This document shows, in pieces, positions 1 to 27,671 of a stretch of DNA of 64,000 nucleotides. Positions within the stretch are counted from its first letter, which is position 1; every line of letters starts with the position of its first letter. Source of the DNA: Dimorphilus gyrociliatus. Taxonomy: Eukaryota > Animalia > Annelida. The notes under the pieces were generated by a model that worked only from the letters and a program-made list of their open reading frames with translations, ran no database searches and was not told the DNA's origin. The stretch lies in the NCBI GenBank assembly GCA_904063045.1, contig CAJFCJ010000014.1, positions 372,001-436,000 of the forward strand, read 5' to 3'. Made by a program: the position numbers and the translations under genes.

Positions 1-2325
1 TTCTGCGTCGAAAAAAATCAGCGTCTAGTTTTTAAAATCTACATGAAATATATGAAAGAAACCTCTCAGTTTATAATTGATTTCAATTGTTAAATTGGTA
101 AGAATATTTGAAGAAGAGATGAGCAAATAAAAATACTGTTGATTATCTCTCTTGGGATCAAAGATAAACAAGTTTCTCTTCCTGCAAAATGCGTCCACCT
201 GTGCAATAGACCTACGCTCTTCTCCTCTGAAGAGATAATAGCAAGCTCCTCTGTAGAAATATCCATCGCTGCGACTACAGGCTATTGAAGGAGAGAGTTG
301 AGGAGTTTTTCACCCCAATTCATATATCACTTTACCTCTCTGAATTCGTTTTTCGCATCTGATTATAGGAAGAAATCTCGTGTAATAGATAAAGTTCATT
401 AACCTTCTATAAAAGATAACACAAGTTATTTTCATTAATCATATATATGTGAATACTACAATGCTTTGAATTTTTGATCAATTTTATCTTTCACTTTAAG
501 AGAATGCTATTTCGAAAAATGCTCTCGTTTTTATTAAGATCTAACTATCTATTGAAGGTGATACAAACCAACTTGATCCAGTTTGATTGAAATTGACACG
601 ATGAAAAGTTGACAGCATTTGTACAATTTAAATTGAATAATGACATTCCAAAGTATCTTAACCGTATTCGATGAAAAGAAGTTGAACCTGCAGAAAATCC
701 AAAATATCCGCAAACTAGTTTTGCTTCTTTCCAATACAAGTAGAATGGATTAATGTGATACCAGGATTTCTTGTAATATATCTGAAGACTTCCTTCAAAT
801 TCACTTTTTTCATTTACTTTACCAGTTTCCGCAAATAAACTGCCTTTTGAAAAACTATATAGTCTGAGATCCATATCTTTATTGAACAAATGAATATGGC
901 GAGTTAGAGAAATGATAAGGAAAACAAGCAATTTACCTTTATGTTCCATTATGTCATTTTCACAATATATTTGAAAGGTGAAAAAGAGATCGGTAGATAT
1001 TTCTAATGAGCATCCATTCAAGTATGAATCGTCCCATTTGCAATTCTTCAATATGGGCCAATGAGTATCGTTTATTGCAGAATTCTGATATTTAAATATG
1101 TCGTTTGTCTAAATAAAGAGAATATTAATCAATCAGTTTGTCAATTCGTCAATTCATCAGTCAAAAAACAAACGTATTTCGCTTTCATTTTCACACTGAT
1201 CCCGTGAAAGTATATATCAGGTTTAACTGGTTTAAGAGTCAAACCTAAACGTTGACAATTCGCACTCATTGCCATCTGAATATCTTCGTTTATTGAATAG
1301 GCCAAGGGAATTACGCCAAATCTTCGAGAATCTATGTAGTGAAGAACTATTACGCTGCTGCTGCTTGTTTTTGGAGTGTGGTAAAAGTATTTGTAATAGA
1401 ATGAAGGAGTCTCTCTGATGGAGACATCTTTTTAAACAACTGCGATTAAGATCATCTGCTGAGCATCATAATTGAATGCAATACCTTGAATATCATTTTC
1501 CGAGCAGTGAACGTCACTGAATAGAGAAGGTGTAGAGATATTTTCTAAAACAGTTAATTCATTATCAACAATTTCGACAAATGCCTTTTTTTCAATGTTT
1601 TCAATGTTGATTTTGGACTGAACTCTTCTGCATACTTCTCCATGTTTGGCCTCCTTTGCAGACAGTTTGTAGAATTGTTGATTGATTCTCAAGAGTATAC
1701 TAAAAGATACGGAACGGAGTGTGTTTGCTGCTATCAGCACTGTGTTGAGAGAGAGATGAAAAAGATATGTAAATTGAATAGACAGGAGGGTTTGAACGAT
1801 TTACTTGGAGATTTCTTGAGGAAACACTTCAAACAGTAGTAATTGGTACAAGATTGGCAGTTTGCTATTTGAATGGTTCTGATGGATTGACGTTTTTACG
1901 ATTTAAGAGTTTGAATGCTTCGCTGTGTAGTATATACCTTTTTGCTATTCGATCCTTAATGATTGCCTTAATAATGCTAGAATTGCGCTTAAATTCTGTA
2001 CGATATACAAATGGACGGAGACGTTGTATTTGCTTTCACAACGAAGTGACTATTGTAAGAGAAACAAACCTTTCATACAAATATTGGCTGTGCTATGCAG
2101 GTTATCATATCCCATTGAAGAACATATGGCATTATTCTGTTCTATTGATAGTTGACCAAACAGCATTGAATATGTAGTTCTGTTGTCTAGTGATATTGCA
2201 TTTAATGCTCCATAGACATATGACGGATTTTGTTGTATAGGAGAAATGAAGTACGTGATCTTTTCGCTAGAGAAAAGAGGAAGAAACGCAGTGAATATAA
2301 ATACCGAAAGAGGAAGAGAAGCCAT
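1..2325 (-). CDS. Secreted multi-domain protein with degenerate SRCR-like repeats and a C-type-lectin-like domain; multi-exon, runs off the left edge
   Basis: ATG at 2325 gives the signal peptide MASLPLSVFIFTAFLPLFSS. SRCR-like segments: NNAICSSMGY, GEVCRRVQS..DVHCSE, WKEAKLVCGYFGF..FNLNC. Manual translation of 300-120 gives CSRSDGYFYRGACYYLFRGEERRSIAQVDAFCR, a CTLD N-terminus. Some internal exon boundaries are unresolved. Confidence 0.6.
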
Positions 2326-3777
2326 TTGAATTTGTATAGAAATCACTGAGTGTTTTAATTCATGAATTGAACATAAGAGCAATATGCAAATGATTCAAAG
2401 TAACATTGCCTTTATTCAATTTATAGTGAAACTGCTAAGTATAACATAAAATCACTTTTACGTGCTTTCTATCAAATTACATGGCAACACTTTTCTGAAA
2501 TTACCTTCAATGTAAATATAGGAAATGTTTAGTTATATTCATTTAGGAAATTGCTGTAGTAGTCAATTCTTAAATTACAGTATTCACTTAAATTGTCTCT
2601 CTACTAGTTGCCGTCTACATCATATGAATGTATTATTGTATTATTTCGTAAGTTATATATCATTTTTATACAGTATAGTGATTGTGATTTTTTTGTATAA
2701 CTCTAATGATATTCCTTTCAGGAATCTGGCTTGTGATTAAACTGTTTACGAATTATTGAGAGTTTCGATGTAAGCTCCAACAGCCGAGACATTCATTCTT
2801 TTGGTATCATTTTTAATAAATTTTATACTTCAACTATCCAGAGTTGAACATGTAATATCTCATTTCAATAATTAATAATATAAAAACACAAATATATAGT
2901 TTATACTGAATATCGCTGTTTACTGAATGATTAAGTCTGATTTAGAGATCAATTGGATATAAGTTCCTCTTTAATATTTATCTTTTCACGAGGCAGTTCG
3001 TGTCCAAAGCTAAGAAATTGCTTGAATTGAATAGTTCGCTAGAAAACTTCTAATGAGGTATTAAAATTATTGAACATTTTTTAAATGCAATTAACAGCTA
3101 CAAATTGTTTGATAGCATTATGGAGTTGTTAATTAATATATCTAAAAAAGGGAAACAGTTATCAGGGAGGCATTCTTTCTAAAGGTGATAATCTGATGAA
3201 GAGGGAGATCGCATTTGGCACAAAACAAACACTTCATATACCTATTGTCATCTTTCAGAAACGGTTTTGTTGCAGTCCAGAAATGCAAAGGGGATGAGGC
3301 TTAAAATCTGAAAAGAAAACAGTTTTACTAAATCTATTATCTACCCTGCTGTCGTCACAATCATTTGTATATGAAAGATGTTTGTGCATTTATACATAAA
3401 CTTATAAGCAATACAAATTAAATTTATCATTCGTACGTATATTACATTCTCTTCAATACTCAATCAATTGAGCAATATAACTAATAAAGGCTGTTTCATT
3501 GTTTAAAAGGGGTTCTATTTATAATTACTACCTTAAAAAGAACTCTATTTCCTAATCCAAATAATTAACTTGCATTTATATAAAGTATGTAACTATGATT
3601 CTATAGGTTGAGTTAACTTCGAAAAGTGTGGAAGTAAGGGTAAAATTTCAAAAAGAGGGGTTACAAAATGTGAGTTCGCTTTTTAAGGGAATTGAAGAAA
3701 TTTAAATATTAGTATTACAGTGTTGAACAGACTATGTTGTAGGTTTTCAGCTTTTGACATAGAATTAGCCAGTCGAA

Positions 3778-5036
3778 ATGGAAATAATCAATTCGTTTAC
3801 CGATGGCTATGTTGCTGTTATCTTTTCTATGATTATATCTTTAAGTAGTGGTAAGGTAGACATTCTTAGCATTCTATTTCCTTTATAATTCACAACGAAA
3901 GTATGCTCTCATAATACAGCTACAGAAGTTGGATGGAATCCTCTTGAAATTGTACTCGTAGAAGGTGGACAGCAAAAAACTGCTGCGTTTGGTGTACTTT
4001 CAGGTAGATGGCCAAGTGTTCAGAGGATATCTTGTACCTTTGAAGATGATCTTCCGAGTCAATTGACGACAAAGACACAATTCAATATTCCTGGTAGTCC
4101 CAATTTTGGAATTAAAAGCCATCCTTTCATTTTAACATTGGCGGGAAGGGTCGTAAGAGTGAAATTTCAAGCTGGAAATGATAACGCATGCGAGAATAAG
4201 GTCTATAGTTTAAAGGTACAATGTAAACAACAGGAGATTACGATCAATTTTCCAACAATAAAAGTAATAGTTACGAACACAAAGGACAGTAGCATGTGCA
4301 ATGATCCTCACCTTAACCAAAAAGTGAAAGGAATTGACGAAGATGGTAGAAACGTAACGAGAAATATTTGTTATGATGTCTACGGGACGGAGGGCGATCA
4401 GATGGAATTAATTAGCGATGCTATTCTAGGTTTGTCTCTGTACGTATAGATATTTCTTGTTTAAACGATTCATCATTTCCCAAAGGTACATCTATCGTTG
4501 TTGAACTTCGAGACGACTACTTCATCGGTAAAGTGTTTTTTTCTTCTAAGTTGGGATTGCTCAACGTTACTACGACGGCAATTTCCAATCGAGGACAGAA
4601 AATTACCCATTGGGGAAAGGAAGACTTATATGTAATCGGCGAGATAACCACACACGTTCAAGCAGTCCTTAAACTGTCGCTGGATAATCTTATAATTGAA
4701 TACAACGACGGGAAGAGATGTCAATCAATTAGAATTGTTAGAATTCAACAGACATTCGGAAAGAGCTATCTAAATGTGCTTATCGAAAAATCAACTAATA
4801 AAGATGGCGTATTTGACAAGCATCACGGTGGTATTTTTGGTTCAATTGCCAATCAACAGTACCAATTCTGTTACCCTGTTCAAGGAGAAGAAAACGTCAC
4901 TGTAGTTAAAATTAATGGAAGATTTGTTAAAGCTTTTCTAAAGGATAAACCTGATCAAGATCATCAATGTTATTTAATTAGTATTCAAGATCTACTCTTC
5001 CCTAAACATGTTTCTTCGTTTCAAAAGTCATTATAA
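3778..5036 (+). CDS. Array member P1: signal peptide + variable domain + CNDPH + ITI-HC-C-like domain
   Basis: Exon1 MEIINSFTDGYVAVIFSMIISLSS (donor gtaag 3851); exon2 contains ORF 4063-4449; intron 4430-4485; exon3 GTSIVVELRDDYFIGK...FQKSL stop. Confidence 0.88.
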
Positions 5037-5342
5037 TAAGTATTCCCCGTTCTGATCAATGATTGAAAAATTATTTCAGTTAAATAAATTATAAATAAAC
5101 AATGCGATAAGACAAATCAATGAAATTGTGATATTATCTATCCAAATGTACTATGTTCGTTTTAGCGGAGAAGATACGCAACGACTTTATAAATTTGATA
5201 CAAAAGATTACATCTTTAGTCTAATAAGAAATTTAATATGTTTATAATTAGGCGTATGAACATATGAAGAATGACGTAATCTCATAAAAGCTAATCATCT
5301 AAGATTGAAAAGAGTCAACAAATGAAAAAATGTCTAGTTGTA

Positions 5343-6219
5343 TTAATAATGCTTTTGAAAATATTTCAAATTCTTTGGATATAAGATCTTGTTTAAATCT
5401 ACTTTATAAAAGTTCTCTCTATCATTGGAGACTCCTTCTCTCGTCGACAATGATTTCATATATCTACCATTCACTTTTAAAACTTTATTTTCACCGAGTA
5501 TTTCGTAGTTTCGTTTTGAAATCACTCCGAATAGACCGCCGTGAAATTTATCAATTATACCTTCATTTAACGATGAATTTCCTATACGAAATGTCAGGCA
5601 ATCTTGGTGAATTTTCAATACTGTTACATTAAGATGTCGTCTATCACTTTTTAGGTTGAAGAAGGACTGTTCCTCTGTTGATTTTACATCCACTCTAAAC
5701 TGTCTATTACTCATGTCAAACTTGTATGAATTTATCCAAAGGAGCTTTTTATCAAAAGGAACATCTATACCAGATGTTGTTACATTTATAAAGCCAATTG
5801 GAGTTTTAAAATAGATTTTATGGATACAAGAATCATCTCTAAGCTTGAAAACAATTGAAGAGTCTGTGTTAAAAAAAAGAAAAGATAAAATGAGAAATGA
5901 GGGAAAGATAAATGAATAATAAAGACAATAATTCAATATCTTACTTAAAATATAATCAGATATTATTTCAAATCCATGTTTTGGTTTTCCTTTCAAATCA
6001 TACGAGACATTAATGCTGACTTTATTAAAATTCTGATCAAATCCATTAACAATTTGCTTCAAGCCAATATCTATATATATATATATATATATATACAGTA
6101 TATAAACAGCAAAAATAGTAAAAATTAACAAGTATAAACTGTAAAGAATCCCTCTTACTATAGCATTTCATCAGATTTATAAGTATAAAGATGAAAATGA
6201 TATGTAAAAAATGAGCCAT
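5343..6219 (-). CDS. Array member P2: signal peptide spliced directly to the ITI-HC-C-like domain (no variable domain, no DPH)
   Basis: Exon1 6219-6159 MAHFLHIIFIFILINLMKCY with gtaag donor. Acceptor (ta)n-ag at 6071; exon2 NIGLKQIVNG...ISDYIL; 81-nt intron 5944-5864; exon3 SSIVFKLRDD...HGGLFG...FQKHY. Confidence 0.78.
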
Positions 6220-6529
6220 TTCTTTGTGTCAACTTCCTTGCTGAACCTAAGAGCGAATGCTTAACCGGTTAAACTATCTCTATACTTTTTTATATAATGT
6301 TTTCTTGTTATTTTACTCTTTGAGTTGTGTTTTAAAGCAAAAAAATAACATGCTATTCCCTAGTTTAATTACCACGTGCCAACTATGAAAAGTATGTCGA
6401 CTCTATTGTTTTTATCATGTTGGCATTGATCGATAAGACATTTAGTGTTTAGATTAGCAAAATGATGTATTTAATACATATCTGATTTATCTAATCATAT
6501 TAAGACAGGAAATATTTTAATCTTTTACA

Positions 6530-7733
6530 TTAATTTATCATTCTTTTAAACATCTCTATGCTCTTTGGATAGAGTATATCGTTCATGTTCATAAAGTAGC
6601 ATGTTTGATCTTCATTAAAATTCCTTTCTCTAAATATGGATTTTACTAATCTATTATTAATCTTTACTACTGCTGTATGTTCATCTTTTTGTACGGGATC
6701 GTAGAAACGATATTGTTTATTTGATATTTCTCCAAATAATCCGCCATGATATTTATCAAGTTCTTGACCTTTTGATGTTGATTGATCAATCATGATATTC
6801 AAGTAGTTTTTACCAATATTTTGATGGACCTTTAGAACTCTAACATTCAAACTTCTTTCCCCTCTCTTAATTCCAATCATTACGTACTCATCCCTTATTT
6901 CAAAATCTATCTTGAAACTATTTCGCTGATTATTCAAAGAGAAATCTTCGGCTACTTGCCATCGAAACCTTCTACGAGGCGGTACAAAGATACTGCTGGT
7001 TGTAATATTTAGAAATCCCAATGGAGTTTGCAAGAGTACCTTCCCTATGTAGAAATCGTCTCGAAGCTCTAACACAACCGCAGATTCTTTAGAGGATAAA
7101 AGAAACATACAATTTAATAACAATCTTTCAATAAACTAATTAAATTACCAAGAATTCGATCGGAAATAATTTCAAATTGATCTCCAGCGTTTCCGTATAA
7201 GTCGTAGCAGATGTTCTTGCGTACTCTACTAGAGGATTCATCCATTCCTTTGACAAGTTGTGTTAAATGAGGATCTTTTTCAGCACTATCACCTTCCTTT
7301 TTTATGACAAGCTTCAACACCGTATTTTCAATTGGTTCAAGCAATTCGTTTGTTGGACATTGTAACTTGACTTCTATGGTAATAGAATCCTTGCCATCTG
7401 GTACAGTACCTTTTGTGGCAGTAAAAGACAAAGTCTTTTGACGATTGCCGGAAGTGAATATTAATAGTTGGGAGGATAAACTAACCGAAGAGGATGGTAC
7501 TTGAACTGTACAGACTAGAACATCTGTTAAAAATGTTCCAATTTTTACAGTAGATTTAACGCCCGCTCCTCCTTCAACTATTGTTATGCAGTCCGGTTTG
7601 AAGCCAAATTCTATAATATATTTCAATAAAATTACTGTATAAAACTTGTAAATAACAAACGAGTACCTTCACCGGCGATCAAGTTCATGGAGAGGGCAAT
7701 AGTTATCAGGAAAAAAGCACTGCGTTTAATCAT
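6530..7733 (-). CDS. Array member P3 (EKDPH)
   Basis: Exon1 MIKRSAFFLITIALSMNLIAGE at 7733; ORFs 7114-7626 and 6530-7123 carry the family motifs. Confidence 0.88.
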
Positions 7734-8360
7734 CTTTTTCAGGATTCTTCTTCTAGCAAGACGCTAAAGCGACTGGTTTATATCCCGGCTAAATAAATAT
7801 ATAAACATAAGAAAAAACGCCAAGTTTCTTAAGTGAGTGCGTGTTTATATAAAAAGTAAACTGATATTTGGATAAGGAATTGTTATTTAACCTTAAATTA
7901 ATTGAAGCCTATTAGCCATATATTTATTAAATAAACAAAAATCAAATGACTTTACAATCTTAATGATAATATACATTATTATTAATGATAATCCGAAATA
8001 GGTAATCTCTATCAGACAATTTCAACAAGGTATCCCTTGCTTGGATTAAGTCTAGGGGTCTATACTTTCAATTGGCCCGAAAAAAGTAGGAACTTTAAAT
8101 TGGATAGCTGTTTTATCTTATAAAGAACAGAGTAAATTTTCACAGAAATGACTTGAACTCTCCCAAAACGTATTCATTTGTTCGACTATAAAATATTATA
8201 AGTTTATTTAAGAAATAAAACGACAAAATAGCGAAACCATTTCGTATTAACTAAGTGAAAATAAAATTTGTAGAAACATAAAAATAATAAGATTATATCG
8301 TCACGATTGCATCATACGTTGGACATGTAAATTACTTTAAAGATAAATATTCATATGACA

Positions 8361-9569
8361 TTATGAAGACTTTTGAAAATCTTTGACACTTTTTGGAAAT
8401 AGTAAATCTTTCAAGGTTAGTGTAAAGCATTTCTCCTTTTGGTTGAATTCCTGTTTTCTAATCCAAGATTTAACGTATCTTCCATTTATCATTACAGCTG
8501 CGTGACTTTCGTTTTCTTGAACGGGTCTGTAAAATGTATATTGTTTATTGGCAATTTCTCCAAAAATTCCCCCATGAAATTGATCGAATACATTATCCTG
8601 TCCCATTTCTCTACTCATTAAAAGATTTAAATGTTCTTTTCCGTATTCTTCTTTAATCTTGACAATTAAAACGCTAAGAATTCTAAAGCCACTATCGTAT
8701 TTTACGTTGATAGCATTTTTATTACTATTGATTGCTAACATTGGTCCATGTTCTTTATCCAATGTGAAATTTTTCAAGTTGTTCCAAGAGAATTTCGACT
8801 TGGAAGAAGTTTCAATATAAGCAGTATTGATTTCAACAACGCCAAATGGCCCTTGGACGAATACTTTACCGATATAATAGTCATCTCGAAGATGAATGAT
8901 TACCGAGGTATCTACGTTCAATAGAAATTAAATATAATTAGCGAAAATATAAAGATAAAGGAGAAAATCTTACTTAGAATCTTATCGGAAAGAATTTCAA
9001 ATTGATCACCAGATTTACCATATAAATCATAACAAACGGCTTTCGTTTGATTAGAGGACATCTCATCGAAAACCCTAACATTTTGCATTAAATGTGGATC
9101 ATTGCATACTTTTCCTCCAGCAGATTGATCTTCAATATGGATTTTTGCAGTTTTTCGATTAAACGTATTCTGATAATCATTATCGCAATCTATCAGAATT
9201 GTTGCTTCTACTGAATCGCAAGGTATACTATTCTGTAAAGCTAAAACTGAAATTTCAATTGCTTTGTTGTTTGGTGAAAAGAATAGATTCTCTTGCAAAA
9301 TTAGCACTCGTAAGCCAAACTCAGATTGCATATGTAGTAGGCAATGCACATCAATATTTTCATCTATAGATATCACCATTTCACCAGAAGTTCCTTCATC
9401 TATCGTATAACTTGGTTGATTAAAACCAATATCTGTTGAAGTAAGGTTTTATATAGAAATAGATATATGAATAATTGAATAATTATTCTTCTTGATACTT
9501 ACTTTGAGACTGTGCTAAAGTTATGATAAAAAGACCTAAAATTGTTGTAAGCATTACGGAAGCCTGCAT
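8361..9569 (-). CDS. Array member P4 (CNDPH)
   Basis: Exon1 MQASVMLTTILGLFIITLAQSQ at 9569; exon2 begins with Calx-beta-like IGFNQPSYTIDEG; ORFs 8918-9379 and 8361-8921. Confidence 0.88.
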
Positions 9570-9931
9570 ATTTTTCAAGTGTACCTTCGGTAATTGTCAA
9601 CAAGACTGATATACTAAAACAATAGCCTTTCTTATAAAGACGAAATTCTTAGATGAGCAAAGTCATATACAGAACTAAAGTACCTTTTCTAAGAAAGCAT
9701 AAAATAAAAAATGTTGTGATCTAGAAAAAGATATACCAGACCCAGATAGAAAACTTTGCCGACGCCTAATATATAAAATGGGGGATAGGTGGAGAAGAGA
9801 GGGGGGGCGGGCGGGCGGCGACTGCGAAGGCGATAGAAGATGAAATGATATTTAAATACAAATGTAAATATTTTTTTTATAGGTAATACTGTATTTTTCA
9901 ATTTTAATTGCAGTATACAAGACAATAAAAA

Positions 9932-11215
9932 TTAGAGCATTTTATCTAAACGATTCAAAGGTTTTGAAAACTTTTCAAGTAGATTAGGACTTATAATTTG
10001 ATTTAACAAAAGCGTATAACATGTTTCATTATGATCAAAAGTATTCTTTAAATATGATTTAACAACAACTCCATTCACTTTAACAAGAGTCACTCTTCTA
10101 TTTTTTTGAATTGGTTTAAAAAATTCATAATCTTGATTTGAAACAATTTGGAATATACCGTTATGATGTGTATCGAATACGTTCATTTCACCTGTCGATT
10201 CGTCAATCATAACGTTCAAATAGCTTTCGCCATTCTGTCTGGTCACTCTATTTACTTTTATCACTTGAATTCTGTCGGCTTCATAATAGCTAAATATTGC
10301 AGTTGATCCATACAAGTTGACTGATAAATTTGGTCCAGAATCTTCGTCACCATTAAAATAATTACCCTGACCATTCCAAAATAATTGCGTGTGTTTGCCT
10401 ATAGCTATGCTAATAGTTGATATGATAATATTTTCCAATGGAGTGTTAAAGAATATCTTCCCAACATAATAATCTCGCTGAAATTCGAATATAGACGCAA
10501 GATCTGGAAAAAAGAATTCAGCTATAGTTATTTCGTATTCCCTAATTAGTAATAATAATAATGAAGAGATAGCTAGAAAAATATTCACTTAGAACATTAT
10601 CCGAAATTAGCTCATACTGACTACCAGCTTTTCCAAAAGTATCATAACAGATTAGCTCCTTGACCAGTACACCTTCTTCGTTGACGCCTAAAACCTTTTG
10701 AGAGAAATAGGGAGCTTCGCAATGTCTAGCTGGTGTTGAATTTATTACGTATAAATCCAAATAAGCATTTTTAACATCTATCACTCTTCCCGTTTCCTCA
10801 CTTTCAAAGCATCTCGCTTCTATACGATACTTTTTATCGGAACATGATGAATCGTCGTTTAAGCCAAAAAGTTCTAAATTCTCTATTGGCCATGTTTTTT
10901 TCAAATAGAAACTATCACTGGGAATAACTAAATCAACTGATCCAGGTGACTTGAGCTGACATTCAATAGGATTTATATAAGGCCAACTGTCTAAGCTAGA
11001 GATAATACCAAAGTCCAACATAATCTCTTCACCTTCGATGATAGTAGCATTCGTTTTAAACCATCCTATCGCTACTTCTGCTGTTTGACGCTTCAAAGTT
11101 ATATTTTTTCAATAAGCTACAAGAAAAAACACTTACGTTCTAAATCATAATCATAATAGCTTTCGCACGGTATGGAAAGGTAGAGAAAACATAGTATATA
11201 AAGAATAAAGCCCAT
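9932..11215 (-). CDS. Array member P5 (DPH replaced by CEAPY)
   Basis: Exon1 MGFILYILCFLYLSIPCESYYDYDLE at 11215; ORFs 10542-11096 and 9932-10588. Confidence 0.85.
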
Positions 11216-11563
11216 CTCTTCTCTAGTCGGTGAAATTCACCAATAAATGCCTTAATCATATATCACTCAGTCTAATATACCACATGGACTTTTTTACCAT
11301 CAGTCAATACTATATAGCAAGCAGTATTAAAATACATAGATACTTATGAAATATAATTCACAATTAGAGTTGCATTCTTTCCAGAAGATGATAAAAGAAA
11401 TCTGATATTAGTAATAGGCTGAAAAATATGATTAACCAACAACTGATATGATTGCAACACTATTGAGATACTAGTTGACTAATTTCATTAATTTTCTTAT
11501 TAATCTTTTATTTTCAACATGGAATGCTATAATAATAATAAAAAAATAACATCTATAAGAAGT

Positions 11564-12768
11564 TTAGATCTTGATGACGTCAATATTTCTAGGAAACAGG
11601 ATATCTTCAATTTTCAACATATAACAGCTATTATTGTCCTTAAATTTTCTAAAGGACTTGACAATTCTATCGTTAATTAGGACAGTTGCTTGATTGGTAT
11701 CTTGAACTGGTTCATAGAATTTATAGTCATTCGAAAAGACAAGACTCAATAGACCACCATGATATTTATCCATTAATCCCAACCTATCACTCGTCTCTTG
11801 AATATTAATATTCAAATAAGACTTTCCAAAGAATTGTTTGATTTTCAATAGAAACAATTTCAACTTTCTTGAATCTCGTCTAATAATTATAGTAATACTA
11901 TTTCGAACGATAATATCAATCTTATATGCTGAATCATCAATTAAACGAGTTCTCTTCTTATCAAACCAAGTTTTATAATATCCATTCGGTCCTTTAACAT
12001 CTTTAGTAGTTACTTCGATACTACCATATATAGTTTTAATGATTATACTTCCTATGTAATAATCATCCCTCAGAGATGAGATGATGCTTACTCCTTTAAG
12101 AAGAAAGAAAACAAGATTATTTCAATTTTTCTACAAACAACAAATTGTTTATTACCTAAATATTTATCGGATAATAGTTCAAAACTATCGCCACTCTTGC
12201 CGTAAAAATCATAGCATATCGTCTGATTAACGGAATTGCCTTCTTCATCTTTCCCTCTAACGACTTGTGCTAGATGGGGATCGCCACACATTTCCGGCGA
12301 CAATGAATCGCTGATTACATAGCTTACAATGTCCGAATGCATTAGTTTATTTTCTGGCATCATTTCAGGGGTACAATCGATAAGCATACCGGCAAAAGTA
12401 GTACCAGATTTACAATCAAAAGGAATATCAATTTGAATTGTTGTTTTCAAATTTGAAGGAGTTAGATGAAAATTTTCTGGAATAAAAATTAAAGATCTAC
12501 CATCCGGACTTCCGCTTTTTACTTTACAATTTAAATAACTTCCATATAGCATATCCCAATCTTTCAAAACACCAAACTCTTCAATAATTGTGTCTCCTTC
12601 TTGAACAAAGCTCGGACTAACCACATCCCTACTGAACCCAATTTCTGGATAAAAAATTCAATGAATGTACCGTATATATAAATATATTAAACACGTACCA
12701 GAATTAAACGAACAATCTCCAATCGAGAAAACTTCTATAACAATTATGCATACGATAAATTTCAACAT
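11564..12768 (-). CDS. Array member P6 (canonical CGDPH)
   Basis: Exon1 MLKFIVCIIVIEVFSIGDCSFNS at 12768; ORF 12088-12624; exon3 ISSLRDDYYIGS...HGGLLS...DILFP. Confidence 0.88.
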
Positions 12769-13167
12769 CTTTCACTATATTTGTGTTATCTCACATGCAA
12801 TTAGAGAATTGAATGAGTAGTTATCAATATTTTAATATTAAACGCTAACAGACTATTTATTATTAATAATATTATTACAGATAAATCTATTCTTATGATT
12901 TTTATGGTAGAATTTTTCTAGAATGACAAAAAATGCGTAAACTTTTTAAAATTCTACTTATAAGGCAACGTGTATGAAATGAAATGAAACTCAAAGTGTA
13001 CTACTTAACTTGTTTTGTTGTCCTTGTTCTATTCCTTTTTTTATAGATCGGATTGCTCTACACGTGGAGAGCTTTAAAGTTAAGAGTAGTTTGGCTATTT
13101 TGAGTTCAAGCCGGCTAATCATCTGTTTTCTGGGTTAGAGCCTCCTTGAATCAAAGAGACGGCCAAT

Positions 13168-14423
13168 ATGAAATATTTCCCTCTTATTTATTGTATCTTT
13201 TGTCTATGGTCATCGACTTTCGGACAGAGTGATATAGGTAACATTTTATATTCATATATTAAAAACAAAAGAGCATAATCAAATAAATATAAATAAACAA
13301 TACTATGTTCCTTTTAAAGAATTGGGATTTTTCCAATATTCGCCTATTGAATTGGAGGAAGGGCAAAAATGCAAAGCAGAGTTTAGCCTTAAAGGTATCT
13401 GGCCTTCGAAATACGAAAATGATGTTTTCGTTTGTAAAATTATGAAAAGTTCGAAATTGGCGCCTATTTTGGTTACTCCTTTATCATTTGAAATCCATAA
13501 AAGTTCTCCCAAACAGATAATAGTCATAACAGTTAAGGAAGACAACGATTGCAGGGATGACAGACCTTACGTTGGTGTTGAAGTTCGCTGTACGAAGAAT
13601 TCTGAAGAATTAACTATTTCTAAATATAATGGTGTCTATTTTAGTGTTATAGACAACACAGTTGGTGAAATATGTAATAAACATCGTATTCAGCAGTTTG
13701 TCAAAGGCTATAACGAAAATGGCGAAGAAGTTCATGAAAAGATATGCTATGATATTTACGGTGAACACGGCGATGTCTTTGAGTTTGTAACCGACTCTTT
13801 ATTAGGTAAATTAAAATTGAATTAATTCTAGAAAGTAACAAATCATCTAAATAAAGGAAAAAAATACAAAACAAATCTATTCAGGTGTTTCAGCCTACTT
13901 TGAAATACGCGAAGAATATCATGTTGGCCGAATATTTATCATTACTCGTCAAGGTTCAATTGAAATAAACAGAGACTTTATTACTGGACCAGAAAATTTC
14001 CATCAGACTTGGGGTCAAGTTAAAAGAATTGAAGTTGGAACCGACTTTAAACTTGTAATTGATCTAAATAAGAAACTTTTGATTAAGGTAGAAGATGAGG
14101 GTAGAGTTCTGGCACTCGTAATTATTAAAGAAGAGAAATCGTTTGAGAAAAGTCACCTTAATATTGCTGTAGAAGAAACCACACCAAATCAAAAGATCCT
14201 CGACGAATTTCAAGGTGGCCTCTTGGGTTCGGCAGCAAATAACGTTTATCATTTCAATAAATCGGTTCAAAGAGGAAGAGAATCGGTAACGAAAGTAAAA
14301 ATCAATCAAAGGCCAGTCGCGTCTAAACTACAGCTAATCAATGATAACGAAGAATGCCACTTGATAAATATAGAAGATATTATCTTTCCTATGCCTGTAT
14401 CTCTCTTCCTACGGTCCGATTAA
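13168..14423 (+). CDS. Array member P7 (DPH replaced by CNKHR)
   Basis: Exon1 MKYFPLIYCIFCLWSSTFGQSDI at 13168; ORF 13322-13825; exon3 from about 13885 to the stop at 14423. Confidence 0.85.
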
Positions 14424-15502
14424 CAGGAAGGATTGACAGAGGAAAAAATGATGTGGTAACTACCGTTACAAGGAATCTGGCTTATCGTTGAACAAAGCAG
14501 CAAAAGCAAACCGAACCTTTGTATAAAGATTACGTAATTTTTGTGGGGGTGATATATGTTTTTTCTCTTTCTTTTCTTCTTCAATAAAATCATATCAACA
14601 AACTCTTTCGATGTAAATAGTTTATATATAGAACTGATATACTCGGTACAAATTTAAAGATTTCGTGTAAATACTTTGAACATGTACCAAGAATGATGAC
14701 TAATCTAAAGTTATATGCCCTCCTTTTACACTTTTGCGTACACTATCTATGTAAATTGTTTATTGAAAGATTAGGATTAAGGGAAAGATTCTTGTTGTTG
14801 TCACAAATATGAAAATCTAAAGGAAGGGAGAAAGGGTTAATTATAAAATTTATCAAAAGTTATTATAAAACTCTAAGTCTATTTCATTTTATTGCAATGT
14901 ATTCGTTGAATTTTAAGAGAGTGTATGCTTTTATTGCTAGCTTCCTTCCTATCCGAATGATTCACTCTATTAAAATGACGTTTGAACTAAGAGGGAAAGA
15001 GAGTAGAGAGGATCTATTCAAAATGAAAAATCTTTCCATCCTCCCTCATAGTATTTCTTATTTATTAGTAACACTTAATAACAAGTAATAAATTGCCGTT
15101 ACAAACAATAATTATGATTTTTACATTCGGTTAAAGCAATGTTACACTTTAAGACCTAGTTTTGAACATTTTTTTTTAAACAAAAAATCACAGTTATTTT
15201 TTTTCATGTTTTTTATGTTGACACCCGACAGTTTTGAATATTTGTGAGTAGTGCAAAATAAGGCGCTTATCCTTTAACAATAGGGGTTCTTAACTTCATT
15301 ATAATTAGATGCAAAAGTCAATATTTAATAATATATCATCTTTGATTACTTTGCCTTACAAGATTTATTATTTATAACTTAACAATCATTTCTAATAATA
15401 AATATACTGAATGATAAAATATCGACAATCACCATACGAAATACCTATGCTATAGATCAACTTTTGACCAAAAATAAATCGCAAACTGCCAATTTTCCAA
15501 CA

Positions 15503-15545
15503 TATAAATAGAACAGAAAAGTTATGCTAGTCACTATCAGCTTTT
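15503..15545 (+). promoter_or_regulatory. TATA box plus Inr-like core promoter of P8; homologous element at 17844-17880 for P9
   Basis: CATATAAATAG followed about 30 nt later by TATCAGC (P8) or CATCAGT (P9), then a shared 5'UTR agaggtagccgttcaatttagagaa. Confidence 0.55.
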
Positions 15546-15576
15546 CACAAAGAGGTAGCCGTTCAATTTAGAGAAA

Positions 15577-16848
15577 ATGAATTCATTTATTGTTGGCTTC
15601 TTTGCTTTTGTTATGTGCAGTGGGTTTGCTTTAGCGCAGAGTAAGTTTACATTAATTTCATTTTGGTTTTATTATCTTATAATTATTATAATTCTTAGAT
15701 CCATTGGAGTTGTCGTTTGGCTGGACACCAACGCAAGTTCAACTTAAAGAAGGTGGTCCATCAAAAGCAGTTTATCTTGGATTCCAAAATGGTGCTATTT
15801 GGCCAAAATTTTCTACAATTGTATGTTACCCGGAAACAGATGCCCACGATACTATTGAAATGAAAGCTGGTTTGTTGAGCCCATGGAAAAAACTGATCGA
15901 CGTTACAGGAATTGAAATAAACAAGCCTTTGAAATTTAAGAAATTGCTTTTTCGAGCTCGAGAGGACAAAATGTGCCAAAATAAACAATACTTTGTAGAA
16001 CTGGCCTGTTATGACAGAGAAAGTCCCGTAAAAGAAAATCCTTTACTTATAAAGTATACTACTCTAGAAATCAATGTACAAAATACCGAGCAAGGTAGTA
16101 TGTGTTCAGATCCTCACTTAACTCAAAAAGTATCTGGATTTAGTGAAGATGGCGAAAGTGTAACAAAAGATGTTTGCTATGATCTCTATGGAAAATCTGG
16201 TGATCAGATGGAATTGATTAGTGATAATGTCTTAGGTAAATAATTCATTGATTCTATCAATATCCTATTTATTAATTGTAATTGTTTCATTTAGGAACTT
16301 CGATCGTTTTTGAACTTCGAGATGATTATTATATCGGCAAAGTTTTCTATGCTACAAAATTGGGATATTTCAACTTTACTACCGACACTATTTCTACATC
16401 AAAATCTTCAAGTTTCAAATGGAAGAAAGAAGATAGTTTTGTCATTGGCGAAAAGGAGAAATATCCTCACGCAATTATCTCCAAAAATGAAATGGATGTT
16501 CTTATTGAATACTATGATAAAGATAGATCTCAATCCATTAGGATTGCTAAAATCCAACAATCATCATTTGGTAAAAGCTATTTAAATATTATGATTGAAA
16601 AGTCAACAAGTTTCAAAGGCGTGTTTGACGAACATCACGGTGGAATTTTTGGTTTAATTGCTAATCAAGATTATGAATTCTACGAGCCAATTCAAGAGAC
16701 GATCGATTTGACTGTTGTTAAAATAAATGGAAGATATGTGAAGGCATTCCTAACCGGCAAGCCTGGTGATACTGATAGATGTTATTCAATGAGTTTGGGA
16801 GATTTAATGTTTCCAAAGAATGTATATTCGTTCCAAAAGTCGTTGTAA
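15577..16848 (+). CDS. Array member P8 (CSDPH)
   Basis: Exon1 MNSFIVGFFAFVMCSGFALAQ; ORFs 15704-16243 and 16282-16848. Confidence 0.9.
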
Positions 16849-16971
16849 GAGAAATGCTATTTAGCATAAATGTTTTTGTTTAATTATAAATGTCTGAAAG
16901 ACCGTTTTTGTTAGAAATGATATTTCCTTTTTTTTGACAACGGTGTTCGACTATTATTTTTTGATAATAAA
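16145..16971 (+). repeat. About 825-bp near-identical direct repeat, copy 1 (copy 2 at 18479-19303)
   Basis: Read-along comparison: end of exon2, intron 2 (1 difference), exon3 (5 aa substitutions plus a one-codon indel) and 3'UTR are shared between P8 and P9. Confidence 0.92.
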
Positions 16972-17915
16972 CGTTAAAAACAGTTATATGTTAAACCCAG
17001 TTGTTTCATTAATTATTTGAAAATGATGTTCATAAAGGACAGACGGAGCAAAGTAGGCTACTGTCAAAGTTGACCTTCTTAGGTGTCTTTTCTTTTTTGA
17101 AAAATGTAGGCTTTCTATCGTTTACATATACAAGTTTCACAGTATATAAAGCTAAATAGACAACACTAATAAGATGATTTCTACATAGTCTTTTATTTTT
17201 AAATAAATAATAATTAGAGTAATACACGAACGTCTTTATTAATCCACTGATTATGTTCACAGTCAACGAAACTGATGGATTATATAGGAAGTGTTAACAT
17301 ATCGTCCATTTCCAAGTGAAGTGAACACTCGGCATTCCAGGTGTGATTTTGTGCATATTATTTTTGATTTATTATTAATAAATGATAAGAAATAATGAGC
17401 TATCATTTCAGAATATCGTATCAATTATTATTTAAATTGACGTACAAAAAAGAAACTACTTTCCGTCGGAAGTAACGCTACATTTGAACAAGTTGCGCCG
17501 TTCCTATTGTATTTTTAATATAGGACTAAAAAGCTTCAGTTTTTTATTTTGAAACAAGGTTTTTTATGTTCGTAGGGGACAGTTTTCAAAAATACTGAGT
17601 CCTGTAAGTCAAAGAGCGCTCCTTTAATAATAGGGGTTTCTACTTCTGGTATCATTCCATCAAAGTTAATCAGTCAATACTTGCCAGAATAGACCAGCAT
17701 ACTTATCGGCAACTTGGGTCGACAAAAAAATCTATATATTTCGCTGTCTTTGTGATGTAATTAACCAATTAAAAATATCAAATACCTATGCTGTAGAGTG
17801 ACCCATTCAAAAAAATACACAGCAAACTATCAACCGGTTGACATATAAATAGGATAGAAATTGGCTTTGAACACATCAGTTTTTCACTGAGAGGTAGCCG
17901 TTCAATTTAGAGAAT

Positions 17916-19179
17916 ATGAATTCATTTATTGTTGGCTTCTCTGCTCTCGTGCTATGCATTGCTTCTTCTTCAGCTCAACGTAAGTATATATTCATATCTT
18001 ATCTGTTCTATTATATTTTACTAACAACTTTTATTATACCACCGCAGACTCTTTTGGTTGGAATCCCAACTTAATTATATTAAAAGAAGCGGGACCCGCC
18101 GTCAAAGTTGAATTAGGTTTGATTGCTAATTCTTGGCCAGGAGGTGTCTTTGTAAAGTGCAAAGCAGTTGCGCCGAAAGCAAAAAAATTTATTCACACCA
18201 GAGCCCCAAATACCGCTCTCAAATGGAAGCCTGTACCAGAAAATAGTGTACATGTGATACCATTTCTCAATAAAAAGATATCTATATTCTTTAAAGCTGT
18301 AAAAGATGGAAAATGTCATGATCACACTTACAAGATAAAGTTGACATGTTGGAAGTTTGTCTTGAAGAATATTCCAATAAAAATAACAAATAGCGTGCTC
18401 ACCATTAAAGTAAAAAACACTGAAACAGGTAGTATGTGCGATGATCCTCATCTTACTCAAAAAGTATCTGGAATTGATGAAGATGGCGAAAGTGTAACAA
18501 AAGATGTTTGCTATGATCTCTATGGAAAATCTGGTGATCAGATGGAATTGATTAGTGATAATGTCTTAGGTAAATAATTTATTGATTCTATCAATATCCT
18601 ATTTATTAATTGTAATTGTTTCATTTAGGAACTTCGATCGTTTTTGAACTTCGAGATGATTATTATATCGGCAAAGTTTTCTATGCTACAAAATTGGGAT
18701 ATTTCAACTTTACTACCGACACTATTTCTACATCAAAATCTTCAAGTTTCAAATGGAAGAAAGAAGATAGTTTTGTCATTGGCGAAAAGGAGAAATATCC
18801 TCACGCAATTATCTCCAAAAATGAAATGGATGTTCTTATTGAATACTATGGTAAAGATAGATCTCAGTCCATTAGGATTGCTAAAATCCAACAATCATTT
18901 GGTAAAAGCTATTTGAACATTCTGATTGAAAAGTCAACAAGTTTCAAAGGCGTGTTTGACGAACATCACGGTGGAATTTTTGGTTTAATTGCTAATCAAG
19001 ATTATGAATTCTACGAACCAGTTCAAGAGACGATCGATTTGACTGTTGTTAAAATAAATGGAAGATTTGTGAAGGCATTCCTAACCGGCAAGCCTGGTGA
19101 TACTGATAGATGTTATTCAATGAGTTTGGGAGATTTAATGTTTCCAAAGAATGCGTATTCATTCCAAAAGTCGTTGTAA
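17916..19179 (+). CDS. Array member P9 (CDDPH)
   Basis: Exon1 MNSFIVGFSALVLCIASSSAQ; ORFs 18119-18577 and 18616-19179. Confidence 0.9.
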
Positions 19180-19303
19180 GAGAAATGCTATTTAGCATAA
19201 ATGTTTTTGTTCAATTATAAATGTCTGAAAGACCGTTTTTGTTAGAAATGATATTTCCTTTTTTTTTGACAACGGTGTTCGACTATTATTTTTTGATAAT
19301 AAA
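18479..19303 (+). repeat. About 825-bp near-identical direct repeat, copy 2
   Basis: Matches 16145-16971. Confidence 0.92.
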
Positions 19304-19536
19304 TTAAGAATAATTAATAAAAAAGTTGTATAATTCTTTCGTTTAGTTCAAACTAAACATAATGATTGACACGCGTCAAGAATATCGAAGAAGGGAAAAT
19401 GTACAATGATGTTTATCCTACTTCAAAAGTAAATGGTAGCGATAAATAAGGTAAAAACTGTATTGTATTATCATGTTACTTGAAAATCTGATGATTGGAT
19501 GGAATTGACTTTTGATAGTGTCTTAGCGATCTGATT

Positions 19537-19850
19537 GAAAAAGAAGATAGTTTTGTCAATAGGGAAAAGAAGAATAATTGGAAAACCTGGTGATACTGAT
19601 GAATGTTATTTGAGGGCGTCTCACCTCATTATCCCTACATATTTCAAATAATTTGAATGAGTAACCTGTATTTGTACAATAACTGCTATCAACAGACTCT
19701 GTCTAAGCAATAGAAGAAACGTTACTAGTTAATGGAAAATTTCTTAAAGCTTTTCTAAAGGATCAACCTGATCAAGATCGTCAATGTTATTCAATCAGTA
19801 TTCAAGATCTTCTCTTCTCTAAACATGCTTATTCGTTTCAAAAGTTATTA
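19537..19850 (+). pseudogene. Relic fragments of array exon 3
   Basis: 19537-19557 matches P8/P9 KKEDSFV; 19580-19610 matches GKPGDTDxCY; 19728-19850 translates VNGKFLKAFLKDQPDQDRQCYSISIQDLLFSKHAYSFQKLL, closest to the P1 C-terminus. Confidence 0.75.
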
Positions 19851-20131
19851 CATTTCGTCTATAAAATACATACAGTATATATAATACTGTGGCTAGTAAT
19901 AGCTGGGTATTTTTGATGTAGTTTAGTAATAATCCTAGTTATCGGTAAAGTTTTTAAAAAAAATGGCCACTGTTTCCATGAGTATTTACTCAATATGCTT
20001 GAAAACATGCTATCAGTCTTTTCCCAACATAGATAACTAGTTGGATGCTTAATTCTGTCTACAGAAAAGTACTTTCTTTGACTAGTGACTTTTGAAAGAA
20101 CGGTGGATGGTAAAGATAGAAGAAATAAATT

Positions 20132-21405
20132 ATGAAAGCGTTGATAACTTTTCTATTTTCGTGTATTATCATTGTTAAATCACAAGTTGATATACGTTTG
20201 TATAATTTACATATTACTTGTTTAAATTCTTTAATTGTTTAGGAACATTTATTGCTAATTTTTAATTCTTTTAACGCAATATACAAACAGCAATTCAATT
20301 TATTGATAATCGAATTGAAAGCGTTGTCGAAAACTCGTCGACGATTCTCAATGTTGGACTGTTGGAACGATGGCCCGACACCATGGATCTAAGATTTGAA
20401 ACACTGTCTTGCCATATATCGATAAGTGGCAACAAAGAACTACCGGATGTTCGTATTGAACCAAATTACGTTTACCTAAATGCTTTATCCAGCAGGAGGT
20501 TTATAACGTTACATGTTGGATATGATAATGATTGTCGAGATACAACTTTAATACTTCAAATAGAATGTAGACGTCAAAATGGTCAGGGAAAGGCTGTTTC
20601 TCTTCCATCTGAAGCTCGTTTGGAGTTGTTAGTTAATGACAGGATGCCTTTGAATTTTTGCAATGATCCAAGAATATTTCAAACAGTTAAAGTTCTACAC
20701 AACGACGGAAGACAAACTCTGGAAGATATTTGTTATGATTTTATTGGAAAAGCAGGTGAACAGTATGAATTTTTCTCGGATAAACTCCTAGGTAGGCTTT
20801 TATCTATTAATAACAAAATCATGATTCAATTCTCCAATACTATATTAAATAACTATACAGGTGTATCGGTCATTTTCGAATTAAAGGATAGCTACGAAGT
20901 TAGCCGTTTACTTGTAAAAACAAAATTCGGATTAATACAGGCCGGCCTCACTTCTATTGGCCTACCAAATCACAATCTGTACAGTTGGGATAGAATAATG
21001 GACTTAAGTAGTGGAATTAATCCGAGGATTCGTCTAAGACTGTCGCCTAATGAGTTAGTTATTGAATTTGAAGAGAATGGCAGAGAATTAAAATTAAGAA
21101 TTATTAGAAAGTTTGATAATTTTAACATACCTGTATTGAAGACTTTTATCGATGAACTATCTTCTGGACAAGTGATTTTTGACCAATATCACGGTGGTCT
21201 ATTAGGCCTAGTTAGCAATAAGAAATATAATTTCTATCAAGTCGATTCATTTGACAAAACATCACCAAACCTTTATATTGAAGGAAGAGAAGTCAAAACG
21301 TTTAAAAAGCCTAATCCACATTTCGATAACAAGTGTTATTCAATGAATTTAAAGGATATTTTATATCCCAATGGTATTGAATTGTTACTCCGAAACAATC
21401 AATGA
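20132..21405 (+). CDS. Array member P10 (CNDPR)
   Basis: Exon1 MKALITFLFSCIIIVKSQVDI at 20132; acceptor at 20290; ORF 20362-21405 includes a 69-nt in-frame intron 20792-20860. Confidence 0.85.
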
Positions 21406-26948: not shown

Positions 26949-27669
26949 CTACTCCCTACAATTTCTCAAATGAGGGCAATTGGGAAAATGTTTCTTGTGC
27001 TCGTCAAGTGGTTTGTCCCCCAGACTCCACTTTCTTAAAATACCATTACAGAAGTAACATTGGACCCTATCAGCTAATCCTAAATAGAAAAATCCCACTC
27101 TTGCTAGTTCTTTTTCATCGATTACACTCTTGAGAGGCCAAGGATTTTTTGGATTTGTAAATGTATTTAGTCTATCCTTCTCTCTTGATAAATCCTCAGC
27201 ACTATTGTCGAATGTGTATGATGCGTTTAGATTTTTTTCGGCTGCTTTAGTCGGCATCTCTGGGCTGTCTTGCGCTGATTTTCCATAACGATTCGGTTTC
27301 GGACGTGCCTGCTGAACCGATTGTGACTGATTTCTAAGAGGATTACTGGAGGCAGCAGAGGGGACGTCAGAAAGTTCGTTATATTGAAATTCAAGCTTAT
27401 TTTCAGAATCATTAGACGATAATACAGCTTTTTCTTTTTTAGCACTCTGAGGAGAGTCCTTATAATATTCACAAGTAGTTTTATGTTTAAGATCTGTCAT
27501 GTCTTTTTCATAAAAACAGAAATGTTTTACTGCGCATTTATGACACGCAATACTATCATCGTCCCTGAAGTAATAATATCCATTATATGCCAATTGAGCG
27601 AAGGTACATTTACACATTTTACATTGTTTATAAGAAGAGAGTCGCTTAGTCGCCTTATCCATATTATAC

Positions 27670-27671
<2 letters not shown>
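26949..27671 (-). CDS. BIR-domain (IAP-family) protein, intronless, two BIRs, no RING
   Basis: BIR2 RLNTF..WP..ELARVGFFYLGLADRVQCYFCNGILRKWSLGDKPLDEHKKHFPNC; N-terminal BIR atypical (C-x2-C-x16-H-x3-C). Confidence 0.88.

Follow-up and report, generated by a model that had tools for sequence, protein, structure and literature searches.

Ten tandem genes of Dimorphilus gyrociliatus encode secreted proteins with a variable Calx-beta-like domain and a conserved ITIH-C-like domain, joined at a candidate Asp-Pro cleavage site

The miniature marine annelid Dimorphilus gyrociliatus carries, on a scaffold of 2.24 Mb, a stretch of 64 kb (in the following the window) in which ten adjoining paralogous genes of three exons each, P1 to P10, occupy positions 3778-21405. 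We consider it probable, although with reservations, that these genes belong to a lineage-expanded family of secreted two-domain proteins, in which a Calx-beta-type domain is followed by a domain of the ITIH-C/VWD fold and which would cut themselves at an Asp-Pro-His motif. Each protein would thus consist of a signal peptide, a fast-evolving β-sandwich of the Calx-beta type (N domain), and a conserved VWD-fold domain (C domain). The ten paralogues as such are confirmed, and their occurrence is far beyond chance. A six-frame profile scan of the window found the ten genes and one C-terminal fragment (19707-19850) with E-values of 1e-43 to 1e-86 per exon, and no further family members. The division into a variable and a conserved half, which the initial annotation of this DNA had claimed, is reflected in the mean pairwise identity between the window paralogues, which is 19% for the N domain and 38% for the C domain.

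Gene models and transcription

The ten genes show as pairs of open frames of exon size, both in the list of open reading frames and in frames running from stop to stop. Gene models, identities to database proteins and joints in RNA contigs all concur with this observation. The splice sites were set by homology and the GT-AG rule. All introns are GT-AG introns in phase 1 with lengths of 54-95 nucleotides (nt), in agreement with the median intron length of 66 bp of the species (PMC7854359). A hydrophobic signal peptide, described as typical before, is encoded by the short exon 1 of all ten genes. Exon 2 (459-537 nt, in P2 126 nt) encodes the variable domain and the beginning of the conserved domain, and exon 3 (about 520-570 nt) its remainder. 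The whole proteins are between 235 and 384 amino acids (aa) long. The genes and the remnant of a further copy are:

P1: 3778..5036, plus strand; exons 3778-3850, 3920-4429 and 4486-5036; 377 aa; CNDPH at 4297-4311; identical to P0007
P2: 5343..6219, minus strand; exons 6219-6159, 6070-5945 and 5863-5343; 235 aa; variable domain absent
P3 (DgyrCDS9723): 6530..7733, minus strand; exons 7733-7667, 7610-7149 and 7086-6530; 361 aa; EKDPH at 7281-7267; identical to P0002
P4: 8361..9569, minus strand; exons 9569-9503, 9432-8974 and 8911-8361; 358 aa; CNDPH at 9106-9092
P5: 9932..11215, minus strand; exons 11215-11137, 11080-10589 and 10503-9932; 380 aa; degenerate CEAPY at 10721-10707; identical to P0009
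P6: 11564..12768, minus strand; exons 12768-12699, 12644-12156 and 12093-11564; 362 aa; canonical CGDPH at 12288-12274; identical to P0010
P7: 13168..14423, plus strand; exons 13168-13237, 13320-13805 and 13885-14423; 364 aa; motif lost, CNKHR at 13673-13687; identical to P0012
P8: 15577..16848, plus strand; exons 15577-15640, 15699-16235 and 16295-16848; 384 aa; CSDPH at 16103-16117
P9: 17916..19179, plus strand; exons 17916-17979, 18048-18569 and 18629-19179; 378 aa; CDDPH at 18437-18451; identical to P0006
Decayed eleventh copy: 19482..19850, plus strand; 19729-19850 with 91% nt identity to the 3' end of P1
P10 (DgyrCDS9730): 20132..21405, plus strand; exons 20132-20195, 20291-20791 and 20861-21405; 369 aa; CNDPR at 20659-20673

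The spliced models of P1, P3, P5, P6, P7 and P9 are letter-identical to the D. gyrociliatus database proteins named in the list. The annotated proteins of P4 (P0008) and P10 are N-terminally shorter than our models, the annotation of P10 (DgyrCDS9730) lacking the signal peptide. In P2, the splice leads from the signal-peptide exon straight into the C domain, at the position equivalent to the Asp of D-P-H. The decayed copy lies between P9 and P10, where short remnants are also found at 19482-19526 and 19540-19574 (exon 2 end, exon 3).

RNA contigs were available from two runs, a D. gyrociliatus run of 2017 (X2) and a coral metatranscriptome of 2024 (X1), which contains a strain that is 95-99% alike. 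Spliced contigs bear out both introns of P1 (run X2), P3 and P4 (runs X1 and X2), and P9 (joints 17979/18048 and 18569/18629). Intron 2 of P2 (5863/5945) has a clean joint, while intron 1 crosses a masked repeat, with exon 1 present in the same contig. P8 shows a clean joint at intron 2 (16235/16295), and its intron 1 (15640/15699) is covered by a partial RNA contig. For the stretch of P5-P7 (9900-14500), run X2 contains 0.77 of the sampled words, and the DNA runs reach a word share of 1.00 for the array region. High contig depth in one RNA run, a measure that is uncalibrated for expression, suggests that the transcripts are abundant.

The conserved C domain

The C domain comprises about 225 aa and was modelled twice. 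The first model (AlphaFold2) covers the full length of P0003, a close relative with an intact C-E-D-P-H motif (predicted local distance difference test, pLDDT, of 85). The second covers the C domain of P3 alone and was built on 56 family sequences (pLDDT 92, predicted template modelling score 0.88). In a Foldseek search of Swiss-Prot with the P0003 model, the best 24 matches are all C-terminal regions of ITIH1-6 (E-values 4e-9 to 1e-6), with VWDE next, and among the AlphaFold clusters ITI_HC_C proteins rank first and VWD proteins after them. The P3 C-domain model superposes on an ITIH2 cluster with a template modelling score (TM) of 0.79 (root-mean-square deviation 2.6 Å, 208 of 232 residues), on a cluster with ITI_HC_C only with a TM of 0.67/0.72, and on a VWD cluster with a TM of 0.56. 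An ESM Atlas model independently reached a TM of 0.80 to the ITIH-C fold. By protein-language-model features, the scores for two ITI_HC_C clusters are 0.94 (199 shared features) and 0.93 (194). On the level of the sequence, the ITI_HC_C signal in the family appears weak but specific, with three of the 56 C domains matching it (best E-value 6.8e-4, sub-threshold) and no other Pfam family matched by two or more of them.

An exhaustive structural search of 48,161 PDB chains with VIA-align retrieved VWD domains as the 19 best matches (Z 9.0-11.7), followed by a drop to 6.5. These include MUC5B, FCGBP D10, VWF, MUC2, vitellogenin, Cypridina luciferase, and RGMB; no ITIH C-terminal domain came up among the solved structures searched. 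With Foldseek against the PDB, the full-length model gave only generic Ig-like matches and the C-domain model none that is significant (OspA artefacts first, MUC2 at rank 44). The profile matched PDB sequences at chance level only, and the word-indexed protein searches, which returned 1, 5, and 25 proteins, contained no ITIH sequences. On the basis of the models, the assignment of the C domain to the VWD fold, and therein to the subtype of the ITIH C-terminus, is supported.

The same superpositions locate the junction motif. Alignments to the C-terminal chains of cleaved proteins start at model residue 7, the Pro of D-P-H, which comes to lie opposite residue 4081 of FCGBP D10 (8qci_B) and residue 169 of RGMB (7ne0_D). 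The latter we take to be the scissile Pro of the Asp168-Pro169 cleavage site. In FCGBP D10 the scissile bond is D4080-P4081, and Asp and His are each required for cleavage (PMC10880436). The motif is therefore predicted to be at the β1-β2 position, where VWD-type domains cut themselves.

The variable N domain

The N domain of about 110-135 aa is built on a conserved frame, which consists of a G-W/F near its start, an E-G, frequently a W-P, and four cysteines. A profile of 15 N domains aligns to Pfam-verified Calx-beta segments over 89 columns (hhalign 92.3%, E-value 5.6e-7), the comparison with Calx-beta/LapA clusters gives a TM of about 0.76, and feature searches concur. In addition, the paralogue DgyrCDS6856, which is encoded elsewhere in the genome, passes the Pfam Calx-beta cut-off (38.1 bits against 27), and contains two Pfam-significant Calx-beta stretches ahead of the same C domain. 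The earlier description of the N domain as Calx-beta/Ig-like is thus upheld by the hhalign result and by DgyrCDS6856, but the N domains of the window stay under the Pfam threshold. Profile and model comparisons support a relation to Calx-beta at the superfamily level rather than membership in the Pfam family.

Calx-beta-like repeats of similar kind are also found in giant proteins of the sponge symbionts AqS3, AqS1, and Thioalkalivibrio sp. HK1 (P0020, P0024, P0122), in which 8-35 copies of ~105 aa are arranged in tandem. The bacterial giants match only the first 110 positions of the family profile, with 10-14 bits per copy, and part of them are Pfam Calx-beta proteins.

The junction motif and the cysteines

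The motif C-x-D-P-H had been called typical of the array, but it is found in only 5 of the 10 copies, D-P-H being kept in 6. It reads C-N-D-P-H in P1 and P4, C-G-D-P-H in P6, C-S-D-P-H in P8, and C-D-D-P-H in P9. The Cys is lost in P3 (E-K-D-P-H), the His is changed to Arg in P10 (C-N-D-P-R), the Asp is lost in P5 (C-E-A-P-Y), P7 has C-N-K-H-R at this position, and the motif is absent in P2. Across the family, D-P-H is retained in about 50 of 60 members, mostly as GDPHF.Q. Invariant or nearly so are the D, P, and H, a Gln at Asp+5, Cys-Tyr-Asp, two glycines, and the C-terminal Cys.

Two of the window copies are informative with respect to disulfides. P3 has lost the Cys before DPH together with one Cys of the N domain, its putative partner, and P2 has lost both cysteines of the C domain. 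This paired loss points to three disulfides that are all formed within the domains, none of them spanning the Asp-Pro bond. The co-loss of cysteines among the paralogues therefore suggests that the two sides of the presumed cut are not tethered.

Evolution of the array

P8 and P9 share a homogenised tract, which was delimited by pairwise alignment:

P8/P9 tract: 16144..16971 (P8) and 18478-19302 (P9), plus strand; about 828 nt, 98% identity

The tract begins about ten codons past DPH and covers intron 2 and about 120 nt of the 3' flank. In contrast to its 98%, the identity of P8 and P9 amounts to about 85% over promoter and exon 1, and to about 40% where the N domain is encoded. Such a mosaic requires recombination or gene conversion that spared the N domain. 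In the tree, P2 and P3 are sisters (97/87). The truncated P2 and the decayed copy between P9 and P10 round out the birth-and-death picture of the array.

A comparison with the related strain (95-99% alike) gives 30 nonsynonymous and 5 synonymous differences for the N domains of P8 and P9 taken together, and 2 and 3, respectively, for the C domain of P8; these counts are small, are drawn from the listed differences only, and refer to a comparison strain that is undefined. They are compatible with an N domain whose evolution is relaxed or diversifying, and with a C domain under purifying selection. Positive selection was also considered for the N domain but is not borne out, as 30:5 does not significantly exceed the ratio of about 3.8:1 expected under neutrality.

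The family outside the array

An exhaustive profile search through 1.8 billion proteins retrieved 519 at E-values of up to 0.001. They fall into two groups, small proteins matching both domains, and giant bacterial proteins matching with the N part only. All small named matches that were looked up belong to D. gyrociliatus, where they represent at least 30 loci on many scaffolds, and the remainder comes from Logan and JGI contigs (for family contigs from outside Dimorphilus: SRR23372216/28/29, SRR31837527, and JGI). None of the family members has a name or a precomputed Pfam domain. The ten genes do form a tandem array, as had been claimed, but the family is not confined to it. In the tree, a subfamily of 17 sequences, which is well supported, comprises the window genes and, interspersed among them, members from elsewhere. 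A larger group of 41 has the canonical G-D-P-H-F-x-Q. Outside D, P, and H, the identity of the C domains across the family is only about 25%. For D. gyrociliatus, only nine expanded families have been reported, mostly local duplicates tied to immunity (PMC7854359). An expansion to at least 30 loci is notable in a genome known for gene loss.

A genomic contig of 5.2 kb from another species (L001, Logan SRR23372229) contains at 771-4690 at least three tandem members, one of them without intron 2. The orthologue of P10 on this contig has TEPK in place of NDPR and thus no DPH either, which implies that the loss of DPH is old in that lineage. Four annotated D. gyrociliatus proteins of 608-1236 aa, DgyrCDS8596, 8597, 8601, and 4491 (P0154, P0057, P0022, and P0039), contain two or three units of N and C domain serially; either these multi-unit proteins are real or tandem genes were fused by the annotation.

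In two transcripts from the Logan contigs of SRR31837527 (L005; P0065 and P0101), (K/G)DPH and the same C domain are preceded by an N-terminal module of another kind, rich in Cys and Trp. Inspected by eye, this module could be read as a C-type lectin, a reading that has no Pfam support and serves as a lead only. The constant domain would then occur with N-terminal modules of at least two kinds.

Self-cleavage and its alternatives

In the D-P-H copies (P1, P3, P4, P6, P8, and P9), the Asp side chain would attack its own peptide bond, presumably in the late, acidic part of the secretory pathway. Cys-x-Asp would then be the C-terminus of one product, the N fragment, and Pro-His the start of the other, the C fragment. 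Given that the pattern of Cys loss points to no disulfide over the cut, the fragments could part as in ITIH, unlike those of FCGBP or RGM. P5, P7, and P2, which have no Asp, and probably P10 with its His to Arg change would be non-cleaving derivatives. The array evolves by tandem duplication, by decay, and by gene conversion that homogenises the constant half, and the N domain gains replacements at a rate that is close to neutral or exceeds it. The proteins would most likely act as abundant extracellular recognition or matrix components (mucus, adhesive, egg capsule, immune recognition) with the N domain as diversified binder.

Several observations weigh against this scenario. Exon products of the window do not reach the Pfam thresholds of ITI_HC_C (PF06668), VWD (PF00094), or Calx-beta (PF03160). 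For ITI_HC_C there are zero matches at E-values of up to 1, and a VWD match is absent among the window products as well as among the 56 family C domains. The likeness to the ITIH C-terminus, which had been seen by eye before, therefore stands with respect to Foldseek, the TM of 0.79, and the language-model features, but does not extend to the Pfam threshold of ITI_HC_C within the window. The linker before DPH has a pLDDT of <50 (residues 114-118 of the full-length model), and for this reason a preceding β1-strand in the manner of VWD domains is not readable from the model. Among the window copies with the Asp, the Gly before it is retained only in P6, the others having N, S, D, or K. For FCGBP it has been proposed that a cis Gly-Asp bond favours the attack (PMC10880436), which counts against cleavage of the Gly-less copies. 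In addition, three or four of the ten copies have no motif and are still intact genes, so that cleavage cannot be essential in every member. The small substitution counts and the uncalibrated RNA depth mentioned above belong here as well.

There are two main alternatives, both of which we regard as unlikely. According to the first, the proteins couple in the style of ITIH. The anhydride would be captured by a glycan hydroxyl, and the Calx-beta domain would become ester-linked through its C-terminal Asp to a glycosaminoglycan, a mucin glycan, or a cuticle or egg-capsule polymer, leaving the C domain as a disposable coupling propeptide. The heavy chains 1-3 of ITIH are esterified to chondroitin sulfate in this way, via the Asp that is freed at D|PHFII. 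The C domain is nearer to ITIH-C than to any VWD, and a tethering disulfide appears to be missing as in ITIH and in the wreath domain of sponges (PMC11670116). However, an acceptor, a bikunin-like partner, or a transfer enzyme was not found, nor was it looked for, and cleaved GDPH sites of VWD proteins mostly just hydrolyse. P2, which is a C domain alone and nevertheless transcribed and spliced, would be odd for a discarded propeptide, an objection that is eased by the possibility that P2 is decaying (long branch, lost cysteines). It is doubtful that the family represents a miniature and diversified version of the mechanism of ITIH and the sponge aggregation factor, in which the constant domain transfers the C-terminal Asp of the variable domain to extracellular glycans. 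If it were true, a repertoire of recognition domains would be bound covalently to the mucus, cuticle, or egg capsule of the worm, and the combination of Calx-beta, Asp-Pro, and VWD-like domain would be an ancient metazoan module common to sponges and bilaterians.

The second alternative, to which we assign a similarly low probability, dispenses with cleavage. D-P-H would be retained for its structural role, as a turn within the VWD-type fold, and the two domains would stay together in an intact binding protein, for instance one of a lectin-like or matrix-binding kind. The missing Gly at -1 in five of the six D-P-H copies of the window and the survival of several motif-less copies as intact genes would be readily explained, and many VWD domains function without GDPH. 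However, D, P, and H are each conserved in a family whose C domains have otherwise diverged as far as described above, and the motif superposes on sites that are cleaved experimentally. Moreover, ITIH1 and ITIH2 are cut at D|PHFII without a preceding Gly. This agrees with the naming of only ITIH3, 5, and 6 as proteins that carry GDPH, located between the first two strands of the VWD-like sandwich (PMC10880436).

An artefact of annotation or assembly, or a dead pseudogene array, for which the decayed copy at 19482-19850 and the truncation of P2 might be invoked, is refuted by the word share of the DNA runs together with spliced transcripts in two independent runs including the divergent strain in the coral metatranscriptome, and is further contradicted by ten open frames with canonical phase-1 splice sites throughout and by the purifying selection on the C domain. 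Self-cleavage at Asp-Pro-His in a secreted two-domain family remains the reading we favour. The ITIH-C fold and the motif are found here in proteins of about 340 residues, and neighbouring genes offer natural variants of the motif (G/N/S/D/K-DPH, DPR, APY, and KHR, besides one copy that begins at the cut site). P1 to P10 therefore constitute a compact natural mutational series on the needs of Asp-Pro self-cleavage and coupling.

Neighbouring genes

Downstream of the array, two adjoining open reading frames on the minus strand (26952-27671 and 28881-29594) contain two BIR stretches each (Pfam E-values 1e-26 and 2e-29), and look like a local duplication of an IAP-like (inhibitor-of-apoptosis) gene. 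Further neighbours in the window, as identified by Pfam, are:

37737-38528, minus strand: Nse2-type MIZ zinc finger
44715-47567, minus strand: Nup160
54210-57594, minus strand: exons of an ABCB-type transporter
62949-63659, plus strand: acid-sphingomyelinase-like C-terminal region

None of these four has an obvious functional tie to the array.

Comparison with known systems

ITIH is the best structural match by three routes (Foldseek against Swiss-Prot, ESM, and cluster TM). Both have (G)DPH at the N-terminal edge of the domain, a similar spacing of Cys-aromatic-Asp/Asn...G..G and of the C-terminal Cys-Trp/Tyr, and apparently no disulfide tether over the cut. In contrast to ITIH, the window proteins lack VIT and vWA, as had been noted initially; a single Calx-beta-like domain is all that precedes the motif. 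The worm proteins also have about 360 aa instead of about 900, their sequence similarity is under the Pfam threshold, a Cys is present at position -2 from the Asp in the window clade, and there are tens of tandem paralogues instead of a handful of genes.

With the VWD domains that have an autocatalytic GDPH (FCGBP, MUC2, MUC4, RGM, and SUSD2), the C domain shares the fold (Z 9-11.7), and the Pro of DPH falls on the N-terminal residue that cleavage creates in the FCGBP D10 and RGMB chains. However, C8, TIL, and E modules are missing in the worm proteins, and the disulfide that retains β1 after cleavage in FCGBP and RGM seems to be absent. The C domain is also closer to ITIH-C than to VWD in terms of TM. 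The N domain shares the E-G and D..C/E...aromatic motifs with Calx-beta (PF03160)/LapA, from which the sub-threshold N domains of the window differ by their four conserved cysteines.

The initial annotation knew of no described family with this architecture, but an analogue exists in the sponge aggregation factor (PMC11670116). Compared by architecture only, this is the nearest described system. It consists of Calx-beta repeats, an Asp-Pro hairpin, and a VWD/ITIH-C/RGM-like wreath domain without the tethering Cys, its genes are tandemly clustered and variable among paralogues with secreted products, and both cleavage and glycan binding by the freed Asp have been proposed for it (PMC11670116). 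The order of the parts is the same in the worm, whose proteins are secreted, clustered, and variable too. However, the sponge proteins are giants with 8-29 Calx-beta domains and a precursor of about 430 kDa, and the wreath domain was reported to be demosponge-specific (PMC11670116). The worm proteins have one Calx-beta-like domain (two in DgyrCDS6856), and the fold searches with them in Swiss-Prot and the AlphaFold clusters returned ITIH-C and VWD proteins, with neither a sponge nor a wreath protein among the names of the entries. The worm family differs in being miniature, bilaterian, nearer to ITIH-C than to any VWD match, and expanded amid gene loss, and its architectural parallel to the sponge aggregation factor links sponge self-recognition, ITIH, and the VWD proteins via one module.

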